Shown: positions 4,836 to 9,231, counted from the stretch's first letter. The stretch is DNA of 64,000 nucleotides from Blastocladiella emersonii ATCC 22665 (GCA_025594325.1 JANHCV010000006.1:1054001-1118000); one strand, 5' to 3'. Made by a program: numbers and translations. The notes: a model not told the origin generated them from the letters alone.

Positions 4836-5816
4836 ATGACCCACTGCGCCCCGATCCACGTCCCCGCCGTCCAGACCCAGTCGCAGTCGCAGTCGCAGGC
4901 CCAGTGGGGCGGCAACGGCGCCCAGTCGCAGTCGCAGTCGCAGACCCAGTGGGGCACCGGCAACGGCGCGCAGCAGCAATCCCAGTCCCAGTCGCAGTCG
5001 CAGTGGGGCATCCACGGCGATGCCGCGCAGCAGCAGTCGCAGGCGCAGTTCCAGTGGTCGGGCAACGGCCACCATTCGGTCGACCAGGCCCAGTCGCAGT
5101 CGCAGTCGCAGTGGGGCAGCGGCCACGGCGCTCAGCAGCAGTCGCAGTCGCAGTCGCAGTGGAGCAACGGCCACGGCGACGCCGCGCAGCAGCAGTCCCA
5201 GTCGCAGTTCCAGGGCAACTGGGGCAACCACGGCGACGCCGCGCAGCAGCAGTCGCAGTCGCAGTTCCAGGGCAACTGGGGCAACCACCACTCGGTCGAC
5301 CAGGCCCAGTCGCAGTCGCAGTCGCAGTCGCAGTGGGGCACCGGCCACGGCGCTCAGTCCCAGTCGCAGTCCCAGTCGCAGTCGCAGTGGGGCCACGGTC
5401 ACGGTGACGCCCCGCAGCAGCAGTCTCAGTCGCAGACGCAGTGGGGCTCGGGCCACGGCGACGTCGCGCAGCAGCAGTCGCAGGCGCAGACCCAGTGGTC
5501 GGACAACGGCCACCACTCGGTTGATCAGTTCCAGTCGCAGTCGCAGGCCCAGTTTGGCGGCAACGGCGCGCAGCAGCAGTCGCAGTCGCAGGGCCAGTGG
5601 TCCAACGGCCACGGCGACGCCTTCCAGTCGCAGTCGCAGTCGCAGTTCCAGGGCCACCACTCGGCCGACGGCTTCGTCGGCGGCAACCCGGCCACCTGGG
5701 GTCCCTCGGGCGACTGCGGCAACGGCGGCGACTTCCACATTCTCCCGATCAACAACCACGGCGACTGCGGCAGCGACGTCGTGACCATCCTGCCCATCAA
5801 CCACGGCTGCTGCTAA
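4836..5816 (+). CDS. Gln/Ser/Gly/His/Trp tandem-repeat protein (326 aa), prion/amyloid-like
   Basis: ATG in TCAAGATG context after a pyrimidine/A-rich leader; ~14 imperfect (Q)QQSQSQSQW-G-x-G-H-G repeats; strongly biased codons (CAG TCG); C-terminus ...ILPINNHGDC...ILPINHGCC; AT-richer 3'UTR follows. Confidence 0.85.
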   Translation: MTHCAPIHVPAVQTQSQSQSQAQWGGNGAQSQSQSQTQWGTGNGAQQQSQSQSQSQWGIHGDAAQQQSQAQFQWSGNGHHSVDQAQSQSQSQWGSGHGAQQQSQSQSQWSNGHGDAAQQQSQSQFQGNWGNHGDAAQQQSQSQFQGNWGNHHSVDQAQSQSQSQSQWGTGHGAQSQSQSQSQSQWGHGHGDAPQQQSQSQTQWGSGHGDVAQQQSQAQTQWSDNGHHSVDQFQSQSQAQFGGNGAQQQSQSQGQWSNGHGDAFQSQSQSQFQGHHSADGFVGGNPATWGPSGDCGNGGDFHILPINNHGDCGSDVVTILPINHGCC

Positions 5817-6872: not shown

Positions 6873-7739
6873 GCGTGGTGGTTAAGTCGAATACATGCTT
6901 TCTTCCTGTTTGCTTCACTTTCTTCGTCATGCTAGCCGGGTGGAAGGTTCAACTTACATGTGGCGCAACACGTCGGTTGTGGCGCCGCCACTCCGGCCAA
7001 TCCCCTTCGCCTAGTGTTGAAGGAACGGCTCGTACGTAAACCATGACAAGACAGAATCTAATGGGACTGGTTTCTCACCCTTGCTTATACATGACTCGCC
7101 GCATCACTTCAGCTTCCACCTGTCGCGATGGCCCACTTTGCCTCACGTCCAAGCTTCAACGTGAGCCACAGCGGCCGCCGATCCGCCCGGCCCTCAGCCG
7201 AGGAGTGCGACTCGGCGGACGTGTGTGGCGCGAGATGGATGAGGCCACGGTTTCAATTTGGATCGGAGCAAGACGAAACGAACGTGACACCGGACCGGTG
7301 CGCCGCAAACCGTGTTTGGCAAGGCCGGGAGATCCTTTCGAGATGCGCCGATGAAGGCCTGCCGGAACACATGAAGTTGAGGGTCTAGAAGCAGGTGCTC
7401 GAATCAGGGACATGACCCTCCCTTCGGTGCTGACCGTCAATCGGTGCAGTGGGCCGCAGCCGTCGCCCGCTGCGGAGGACCGCGCTTGCAGCGTTTTGGC
7501 GGAAGCTCTTGCGGCGGGAAATGGAAGTGCATGGAAGGAAACACGAAGCTCGAGGGAGTGGCGTGCGTTCATCGCCTGACCCGGGCACAGCAAGCGGGGC
7601 GTGTTCGCGCGCGCACAGCCCCCAGCCGATCGTACAAGATCGAGGGGCTCCCACGGTCCCGGCCTGCTGCTGCTCCCTCAGTCCGCTTCGCTTCGAGTCG
7701 CCTTGCTACTTGCAACTTCCTTCCTTCACCTCATCCAAC

Positions 7740-9231
7740 ATGCCGGCCCTCTGCGTCGGACTTAACTACTGCGGCACTGATGCTGCCCTCGTCGGTACGT
7801 CGCTGAATTCCGAGCTGAACTCGCCCGGATCTCGCTGACGCCTTGCTCCCGTCCACAGGCAGCGCCACGGACGCGCAGAACATGGCCACCGTCGCCCACG
7901 GCATGGGCATCGAGGAGGTCAGCACGCTCACCGACACGGACGGGCCCGTATCGCACGCCGACATCGTGTGCGCGCTCCGCCAGATGGTCGCCAACGCGCA
8001 GCCGGGCGACGACCTGCTCTTCTCGTTTGCCGGCGCCGGTGCCGCGGGCGAGGGCAACTTCATCCAGGCGTCGGACGGCCCCGTCACTGAGGCCGAGATC
8101 CGCGACATCCTCGCGGCGCTGCCCGAGGGCGCCAAGTTCACCATGGCCGTCGACAGCAGCGCGTCGGACGTGGCCGCCGACATTGACCTGTCGTGCATCA
8201 ACGGCGCCGGCAGCGTCGTGTGCATCGCGTCGGGTACCACGGGCGAGCCCGCGTCGGTCGAGTGCGGCAGCACCTTCACGTCGTCGCTCGTTTCGGTGCT
8301 TGGCGAGAACCCGGGTATCACCTGGTCCGAGGCGGCGGCGCTCGCCGACCCGTCGGGCAACGCGACGGTCGCGGCAACGCAGACCGAGCTCATCTACTCC
8401 CCCGCGTTCTCATCGGACTCGGTTGCCGCTGACGGCGTGCACGCCGCGGTCAACTCGGACGACCTCATCGACCAGACGGTCAACCTGCGACTCAACCCGG
8501 GCACGACGACGGTGACGCGCCTCGACCGCGACGGCGACGGCGTGGCCGAGACGGTGGTGACGCGCGACACGTCGCTGGGCGTGACGATCACGGACGTGTA
8601 CGGTCGCAGCGGCCACGTTGACAACCGCGGCGTCGAGTTCGACGACGGGACGCGCATCGCGCAGGCCGACTACAACGCCGACGGCGTCATGGATGTGTCG
8701 GCGACGTACCGCAATGGCAAGCTGGTCGAAAGCCGCGCCGACAACGACCTGGACGGCAAGATCGACTACCGCATGACGACAGACGCGAACGGAACCGTGG
8801 TCAACACGACGGACATGAACGAGGACGGGTTTGCCGAGCAGACGACCATCGTCACGAACCAGGACGGCGTCACCATCAACAAGTACGACTTTGACAGCGA
8901 CGGCAAGATCAACACGGCCGTGTACCGCGACGCCAGCGGCACCGCGTACGCGGAGCACGACCTGAACGGCGACGGCGTCGCGGACGCGACCACGACGTAC
9001 CGCAACGGCCAGCTCGTGGCCGGCGAGCTCGACACGAACGGCGACGGTGTGCTCGACACGGTGGTCGTGCACAACGCCGAGGACGGGCTCTACTACGTGT
9101 CCGAGGACACGGACCTAAACGGCGACTTTGAGACGGCGCGCGGGCCTGACACGAACGGCCTGGCCAACGTGCTCGACTCGATCGGCGACAACTCGCAGGT
9201 GGACGTTGGTCAGTGGGACATGGCCGCTTAA
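7740..9231 (+). CDS. Catalytically inactive metacaspase-like (C14) domain fused to Dx[DN]xDG Ca-binding repeats (475 aa)
   Basis: Exon 1 7740-7794, intron 7795-7858 (GTACGT...CAG), exon 2 7859-9231. Spliced N-terminus MPALCVGLNYCGTDAALVGSATDAQNM matches the metacaspase AL.IGINY...L.GC.ND..M pattern; AQPGDDLLFSFAGAG (His->Ala) and AVDSSAS (Cys->Ser); C-terminal DxDGDG-type repeats. Confidence 0.8.

Follow-up and report, generated by a model that had tools for sequence, protein, structure and literature searches.

Regulators that keep a caspase fold without catalytic activity are known, among them cFLIP, the metacaspase MCA4 of Trypanosoma brucei (TbMCA4) and the pseudo-orthocaspases. To our knowledge, only few pseudo-proteases of the caspase superfamily are understood outside animals. 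Here, we present the gene structure, both domain folds, the loss of the catalytic dyad, the motif array, the family context and the differential conservation of a protein of Blastocladiella emersonii ATCC 22665, in which a metacaspase-like domain lacking the catalytic His and Cys is fused to an array of Dx[DN]xDG loops. Its gene is located at positions 7740-9231 on the plus strand of a stretch of 64,000 nt (GCA_025594325.1 JANHCV010000006.1:1054001-1118000), in the following called the window, from whose first letter all positions are counted. The claims made at the level of the sequence can be regarded as solid. For the function, we favour a non-proteolytic, Ca2+-responsive adaptor or decoy with predicted Ca2+-binding capacity, an assignment to which we give somewhat better than even chances.

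For the protease-like half, the closest described systems are the type I metacaspases such as yeast Yca1 (4F6O/4F6P), C. glabrata MCA1 (7QP0) and T. brucei MCA2 (TbMCA2; 4AF8/4AFP). They have the same fold (template modelling (TM) score 0.73-0.76) and share with our protein the landmarks G.NY...G...DA, F.[FY][SA]G.G and D-S-x at the end of strand 4 as well as the S1 aspartates. In contrast to them, the protein described here is devoid of the His, the Cys, the prodomain and the acidic Ca2+ loop, and it possesses a C-terminal array of hairpins. TbMCA4, the cyanobacterial pseudo-orthocaspases and cFLIP are likewise caspase folds with a substituted dyad that are kept beside active paralogues. From these pseudo-proteases our protein differs by Ala and Ser at the dyad positions, an extra loop deletion, a different partner domain and a family in which 18 of 34 paralogues are dead. 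In the Tyr/Ser pseudo-orthocaspases of cyanobacteria, Tyr and Ser stand for His and Cys (PMC6426788); with Ala and Ser at these positions, the protein is not of that type.

For the array, the nearest counterparts are bacterial DUF6802 (PF20615) and related repeat proteins, which show the same repeat of approximately 24 residues and the same predicted fold, whereas the array described here is shorter and fused to another domain in a eukaryotic, intron-bearing gene. A similar elongated single-layer antiparallel sheet made of hairpins of approximately 23-24 residues is found in MORN1 (6T4R/6T4D), junctophilin (7RXE) and the TCP10 G-box of CPAP/SAS-4 (4BXP), with Z values of 10.3-11.7, but MORN and G-box arrays are devoid of Dx[DN]xDG loops. 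The integrin/FG-GAP “calcium blades” contain the same nine-residue loop DxDxDGxxD between two beta-strands (PMC3123361). Unlike in these, there is no propeller or helix-loop-helix here, and the loops occur every 24 residues along the edge of an open sheet, a context of Dx[DN]xDG that is not listed in that survey. In the literature, no paper was found that describes the features of this protein or links Blastocladiella with metacaspases in substance, and caspases are not mentioned in the B. emersonii genome paper. The new elements are the partner, a DUF6802-type hairpin array of putative Ca2+ loops otherwise seen only in bacteria, the lost Ca2+ region of the protease-like domain, and a radiation of at least 34 copies of which about half are dead.

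The gene consists of two exons with an intact reading frame and encodes a product of 475 aa:

7740..7794, plus strand: exon 1, comprising the first 18 codons, start codon included, and 1 nt; it encodes MPALCVGLNYCGTDAALV-G, beta-strand 1 of the caspase fold
7795..7858, plus strand: intron of 64 nt with a GTACGT donor, a CAG acceptor and a branch-like site CTGAC 19 nt before the acceptor
7859..9231, plus strand: exon 2, including the stop codon at 9229-9231

The spliced product is 100% identical to a database protein of 475 aa (P0001), which NCBI names “Ca(2+)-dependent cysteine protease”. The earlier note on this DNA had warned that, with exon 1 missing from the supplied ORF track, annotation could easily miss the protease-like domain; the public NCBI gene model already includes exon 1 and uses the same splice. 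The splice is further supported by comparison with paralogues, as far as sequences can tell: removal of the intron restores the conserved motif G-[CS]-x-x-D-A, uninterrupted in L009 and other intronless paralogues, and the position of the intron is conserved. The N-terminus “MP..A.C.G.” is common to this protein, its paralogues and relatives in Catenaria. A longer N-terminus starting from an in-frame ATG near 7522 (window 7522-7739, adding approximately 73 residues) was considered and rejected as unlikely, because every paralogue begins at the conserved “MP”. No signal peptide is evident, and the product is probably cytosolic.

The N-terminal half is a metacaspase-like domain in which both catalytic positions are substituted:

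7740..8403, plus strand: compact metacaspase-like (Peptidase_C14) domain, aa 1-200, without prodomain
8035..8037, plus strand: Ala78 at the position of the catalytic His (FSFAG-A-G), from phmmer alignments with 4f6o and 7qp0 and from the family alignment
8038..8055, plus strand: shortened segment GAAGEG, which stands for an acidic loop, GQxxDxxGDExDGxDE, longer by approximately 13 residues in the dyad-bearing paralogues
8158..8160, plus strand: Ser119 at the position of the catalytic Cys (VDS-S-AS), with Asp117 retained just before it, from phmmer alignments and the family alignment

With the full protein, the Pfam profile PF00656 reaches 27.0 bits over aa 3-169, above its gathering score of 21.4; with exon 2 alone it stays under the threshold at 16.7 bits. 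Yeast, Candida, trypanosome and plant metacaspases are matched by phmmer among the sequences of the PDB (E approximately 2e-6 to 6e-5). In the alignments with 4f6o and 7qp0, FSFAGAG is placed on HYSGHGG of the yeast and Candida metacaspases and DSSASD on DSCHSG. An AlphaFold2 model of aa 1-214, calculated with 30 relatives in the alignment, has a mean predicted local distance difference test (pLDDT) value of 89.4 and a predicted TM score (pTM) of 0.87. With this model, Foldseek places 7qp0, 4f6p, 4afp and the bacterial GSU0716 (3bij) first (E approximately 1e-11 to 5e-10), with TMq values of 0.71-0.76 for Yca1, CgMCA1, TbMCA2 and GSU0716 and of 0.73-0.76 without the last of these; caspases rank after the metacaspases. 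The earlier note had proposed a metacaspase fold in which both catalytic residues are replaced, and it had named a structure prediction without a caspase fold as the outcome that would speak against it. The prediction recovered the fold with metacaspases as top matches, and the profile score, the TM values of 0.73-0.76 and the residues Ala78 and Ser119 bear out both parts of the proposal. Judged by its sequence, this domain is unable to act as a Cys-His protease.

In TbMCA2, Ca2+ is bound by four aspartates (D173, D189, D190 and D220), and two further aspartates, D95 and D211, have been proposed to form the S1 pocket (PMC4357240). By motif alignment, in which the correspondence with the TbMCA2 numbering is inferred from motif context, the four Ca2+-site positions read Gly, Glu, Ala and Asp, and the equivalents of Cys92 and Ser156 read Ser and Ala. 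The S1-pocket aspartates are retained as Asp23 (GSATD) and Asp117 (VDSS) in the family alignment, in which the acidic-loop deletion is common only to this protein and two close relatives, L038/P0012 and L034/P0068. That metacaspases are Ca2+-activated, as the earlier note stated, is thus not transferable to this domain, because its own Ca2+-site region is degraded as well. The public name of the protein is misleading, since it has lost both catalytic residues, cysteine and histidine, together with most of the metacaspase Ca2+ site. Canonical metacaspases are 8-stranded monomers by virtue of two extra strands (PMC4357240). The model of the protease-like half shows six core strands according to DSSP, and the two extra strands seem to be absent, across the whole compact family, because strand 4 is followed by the next strand after only approximately 18 residues.

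The Ser at the Cys position could suggest that the domain is still a hydrolase working through other residues, for example with Ser119 as nucleophile, and the Lys/Ser pair of the closest paralogue recalls Ser-Lys dyad enzymes. However, the position of the base is taken by Ala, which is neither Lys nor His, and metacaspases of the TbMCA4 type with an exchange of Cys to Ser are described as pseudopeptidases. Moreover, the residues at the dyad positions vary within the clade (A/S, K/S, S/S), unlike those of a conserved alternative active site, and we regard residual activity of this kind as highly improbable.

The C-terminal half of the protein is occupied by the repeat array:

8404..8505, plus strand: linker, aa 201-234, of low pLDDT at the end of the N-domain model and at the start of the C-domain model
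8506..9147, plus strand: array of 18 beta-strands (nine hairpins), aa 235-448, modelled as a DUF6802-like single-layer antiparallel sheet of the MORN/G-box/OspA kind
8524..8550, plus strand: loop 1, DRDGDGVAE, from aa 241, between strands 21-26 and 36-41 of the C-domain model
8668..8694, plus strand: loop 2, DYNADGVMD, from aa 289
8740..8766, plus strand: loop 3, DNDLDGKID, from aa 313
8812..8838, plus strand: loop 4, DMNEDGFAE, from aa 337
8887..8913, plus strand: loop 5, DFDSDGKIN, from aa 362, also a weak match to the EF-hand_1 loop
8959..8985, plus strand: loop 6, DLNGDGVAD, from aa 386
9031..9057, plus strand: loop 7, DTNGDGVLD, from aa 410
9106..9132, plus strand: loop 8, the variant DTDLNGDFE, from aa 435 (DTDLNG at 9106-9123)
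9160..9204, plus strand: C-terminal capping helix, aa 453-467 (DSSP helix 239-253 of the C-domain model), without a -CC tail

Seven strict D.[DN].DG motifs and one variant had been reported in the earlier note, and every one of its statements about this sequence checked out. The seven strict motifs extend from 8524 to 9048; the first gap between motifs measures 48 aa, and the following motifs are 24-25 aa apart. When the C-terminal 261 residues were shuffled 20,000 times with their composition kept, the mean number of motifs was 0.16 and the maximum three, and none of the 20,000 shuffles reached seven. All eight loops read D-x-[DN]-x-[DN]-G-x-x-[DEN] over nine residues, and positions 1, 3, 5, 6 and 9 are kept in eight of eight. 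The ending “D.D.NGDFET” of loop 8 also occurs in the bacterial relatives P0006 and P0002. For Dx[DN]xDG, at least 12 fold contexts are known in which Ca2+ is bound in a nearly identical manner; loops between beta-strands, as in the “calcium blades”, are among them (PMC3123361).

For aa 215-475, an AlphaFold2 model based on 38 sequences (pLDDT 89, pTM 0.82) is all-beta, with 18 strands forming nine hairpins and a capping helix. In this model, each motif constitutes a long connection between successive hairpins, while tight turns (RNGK, ANGT, QDGV and similar) make the other connections. If the sheet is a simple meander, all eight motif loops would lie on one of its edges. Foldseek matched the model to engineered OspA single-layer sheets, MORN1, junctophilin, teneurin and Rhs repeats. 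VIA-align, which is independent of Foldseek, gave a Z value of 11.7 for OspA and for the TCP10 G-box of CPAP, 10.9 for MORN1, 10.8 for junctophilin-2 and 8-10 for axonemal MORN proteins. In the ESM atlas, bacterial clusters labelled DUF6802, EF-hand or FG-GAP_3 match with TM scores of 0.63-0.69 over more than 200 residues, those with DUF6802 in 52-62% of their members at 0.64; a feature search of the atlas returned only bacterial leads, all below 0.9. When aa 220-475 were scanned alone, the Pfam profile DUF6802 (PF20615) scored 27.9 bits against a gathering score of 27.0. The array is thus modelled as a MORN-like single-layer sheet with Dx[DN]xDG in the loops between hairpins. Of the earlier description as beta-rich repeats of bacterial type, the fold model and the bacterial relatives uphold the general character; the loops join MORN-like hairpins and not an RTX-like roll or an EF-hand.

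Three other assignments were considered and rejected. The EF-hand does not agree with an all-beta model; EF-hand_1 matches the loop only, with 18.9 bits against a threshold of 25.4, and position 12 is not Glu. An FG-GAP or calcium-blade propeller is contradicted by profile scores far under the threshold and by a model that forms an open sheet, and propellers do not occur among the top matches. The nonapeptide GGxGxDxUx of the RTX beta-roll is absent from the sequence, and HCBP_related appears only at E 0.37. Taken together, the EF-hand, FG-GAP, FG-GAP_3, Excalibur and RTX-related profiles gave sub-threshold matches to the loop only. Against the MORN profiles (PF02493 / PF07661), the protein has no match at E up to 10, and MORN_2 is matched at E 0.08 in one bacterial relative only; it is thus by fold alone that the array resembles MORN. 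NCBIfam contains no family for P0001 or P0012.

The two halves of the protein differ in conservation, as the ratio of non-synonymous to synonymous substitution rates (dN/dS) against the closest paralogue, P0012, reveals. It amounts to 0.31 for the dead domain and to 0.80 for the whole array; inside the array, the nine-residue loops show 0.42 and all other positions 0.96. The G+C content at third codon positions is 0.93 and dS is therefore compressed, so that absolute values are unreliable and the ratios can be interpreted only relative to each other. By these contrasts, dead domain and loops are maintained, and the strand faces are free to change.

These contrasts bear on the question whether the sheet needs Ca2+ at all. 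Its fold resembles MORN1, junctophilin and the CPAP G-box, which work without Ca2+; the loops are devoid of the Glu at EF-hand position 12, and the protein is apparently cytosolic, where free Ca2+ is low. The array could thus be a MORN-like protein- or membrane-binding sheet with loops that serve as structural turns without Ca2+ in the cell, and the protein a Ca2+-independent adaptor. This is unlikely in our opinion: positions 1, 3, 5, 6 and 9 are retained in eight of eight loops, the loops change more slowly than the strands (0.42 versus 0.96), and in all solved contexts covered by PMC3123361, Ca2+ is bound by the motif.

The protein belongs to a large family. A six-frame search of the B. emersonii genome detected at least 34 copies of the protease-like domain, of which 16 keep the dyad and 18 do not; the dyad-less copies read A/S, K/S, S/S, M/G, R/T, L/S, H/S, H/D and others. 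The dead metacaspase-array fusion noticed in the earlier note is real, but the note gave an incomplete picture, since the gene is no lone case and belongs to a family of at least 34 paralogues, of which 18 lack the dyad. At 18 loci, 3-12 DxDxDG motifs follow downstream, and seven of these loci have an intact dyad. L009 (G000:C11:1018715) is such an array-bearing, dyad-bearing paralogue, in which the acidic loop and the motifs TDDE and VDLD are retained. The seven paralogues indicate that the array fusion is older than the loss of activity in the lineage of this gene, and as they share its layout, active proteins exist that it could mimic. In Catenaria anguillulae, the same compact domain is found in live and dead members, and in Dinochytrium in live ones; none of these Catenaria and Dinochytrium relatives carries the array. 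The dead Catenaria members P0036, P0038 and P0081 read Y/Q, R/E and S/D at the dyad positions; recurrent loss thus predates or parallels Blastocladiella.

In a maximum-likelihood tree, our protein, P0012 and the broken copy L034 form a clade with a support of 100/100, which sits within a weakly supported group of 12 members that are all dyad-less; two to four changes explain the distribution of the dyad on the tree. Judging from this tree, the dead state is old and persistent, and the dead clade of 12 kept diversifying. P0012 (L038; G000:C18:1163069-1165498, minus strand) is the closest paralogue, a protein of 845 aa encoded approximately 100 kb away on the same contig, with Lys and Ser at the dyad positions; it contains a Pro-rich linker and two complete tandem arrays. 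An array-only gene, P0013, lies approximately 100 kb beyond it. L034 (G000:C19:1691857-1692346) reads Ser/Ser, is spread over three frames with an in-frame TGA and is annotated as a fragment of 96 aa, P0068; it is probably a pseudogene.

The protein itself might also be a functionless gene drifting towards pseudogenisation after the loss of activity. Both catalytic residues and the activation loop are lost, the array has a dN/dS of 0.8-0.96, the clade member L034 is already broken, and no RNA run was listed in the search for sequencing runs. Against such a drift stand the intact frame of 475 codons and the conserved intron position, the dN/dS values of the dead domain (0.31) and the loops (0.42), the high confidence with which both domains are modelled, and the fact that the dead clade persisted and radiated. 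We therefore hold decay to be rather improbable for this gene.

Several further observations were made in the family. Endings in -CC (GDVCC, GDMCC, DDACC) occur in most array-bearing paralogues, being noted at the loci L009, L007/L008, L022/L023, L024, L010 (first gene), L017, L019, L012 and L035; our protein and P0012 have none. The upstream neighbour in the window (4836-5816), an unrelated QSQSQW/GxGHG repeat protein, also ends in ...NHGCC. The -CC ending may be a lineage-wide lipidation or sorting tail. L007/L008 and L022/L023 (each on one contig, tens to hundreds of kb apart) as well as L031/L032 (on two contigs) are identical or near-identical pairs, which represent either recent segmental duplications or residual uncollapsed haplotigs. 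At L037 (G000:C2:1077307-1077549), the last 79-81 residues of array and cap (aa 390-468) recur with 83-85% identity as an isolated segment inside an open frame of 222 aa, and the surroundings of this locus yielded no protease domain. In NCBI, the dyad-bearing paralogue P0017 (KAI9150920.1) bears the name “B-1 B cell differentiation”, which was evidently transferred to it in error.

Outside Blastocladiella, the array was found in bacteria. An exhaustive phmmer search returned 931 matches at E up to 1e-3, and word search and phmmer together yielded hundreds of proteins with the same repeat of approximately 24 residues, D-x-[DN]-x-D-G-x-x-D....Y-x-n-G-k-l-v, at 25-36% identity over 150-250 residues and E values down to 1e-24. 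These bacterial relatives have signal- or lipoprotein-like N-termini, 15-20 repeats and no caspase domain, and those with named genomes belong to Desulfobacterales, Thermodesulfobacteriota and Myxococcota. Two of them show weak similarity to the Leptospira Lsa25.6 adhesin family, and one is labelled “YwqK antitoxin component” by the Joint Genome Institute (JGI). The bacterial loci L039-L118 encode repeat proteins of approximately 530-630 aa, a conserved family across metagenome-assembled genomes of Desulfobacterales and Myxococcota. The array searches returned no eukaryotic protein outside Blastocladiella that carries the array. A bacterial origin of the array module is plausible; repeat proteins with internal repeats at 25-35% identity give no reliable tree.

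Given that at least 18 paralogues carry the array and that its strands evolve fast while its loops are conserved, the faces of the array might be a diversified recognition surface and the paralogues a lineage-specific repertoire, adhesion or self/non-self-like, in which the live or dead caspase-like domain serves as output or assembly module. The two tandem arrays of P0012, the weak match of bacterial relatives to the Lsa25.6 adhesins and the -CC tail on most array-bearing paralogues, a possible membrane anchor, would agree with this. On the other side, dN/dS is approximately 1 and not above 1, with compressed dS and few close sequences, and there is no signal peptide; a repertoire of this kind is in our judgement not probable. 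A more far-reaching version, which we consider improbable and put forward as speculation, is that a bacterial DUF6802 Ca2+-hairpin array was acquired, fused to a compact metacaspase and expanded to at least 18 genes, with fast-evolving sheet faces that would recognise diverse ligands and live and dead domains as effector and decoy; the -CC tails may then be lipid anchors.

In the Ca2+-responsive adaptor or decoy that we favour, Ca2+ would fill the row of loops and stiffen the sheet, and the variable sheet faces would bind a partner. With the S1 aspartates retained, the dead domain would hold an Arg/Lys-containing partner that it cannot cut; alternatively, it would compete with the dyad-bearing paralogues of the same architecture. 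Partner binding, the regulatory role and the location are what we infer from these features. When the dead domain (aa 1-214) and the N-domain of L009 were submitted together to a complex prediction, the score was 0.00, which weighs neither for nor against a pairing.

Several points weigh against the favoured function. Ca2+ binding by the loops is predicted from the motif. Position 12 of the loops is V, A, M or T and not the Glu of EF-hands, because of which their affinity may be too low for cytosolic Ca2+. On the full-length protein, PF20615 scores 17.3 bits and remains below its gathering score of 27.0. The compressed dS limits what can be read from dN/dS, and a strand value of approximately 1 fits a variable binding surface and relaxed constraint alike. 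L034, broken by frameshifts and a stop, demonstrates that the clade does decay, and the search for sequencing runs listed no RNA run for either splice or expression.

If true, the acquisition of a bacterial array and its expansion to a repertoire would amount to an innate-recognition or Ca2+-signalling system without described counterpart in fungi. The array would add a structural context for the Dx[DN]xDG Ca2+ motif, namely a MORN-like sheet with a row of sites on one edge. Furthermore, with live and dead metacaspase domains in the same layout, B. emersonii provides a natural series within one genome, which lets one ask why the dead ones are kept.

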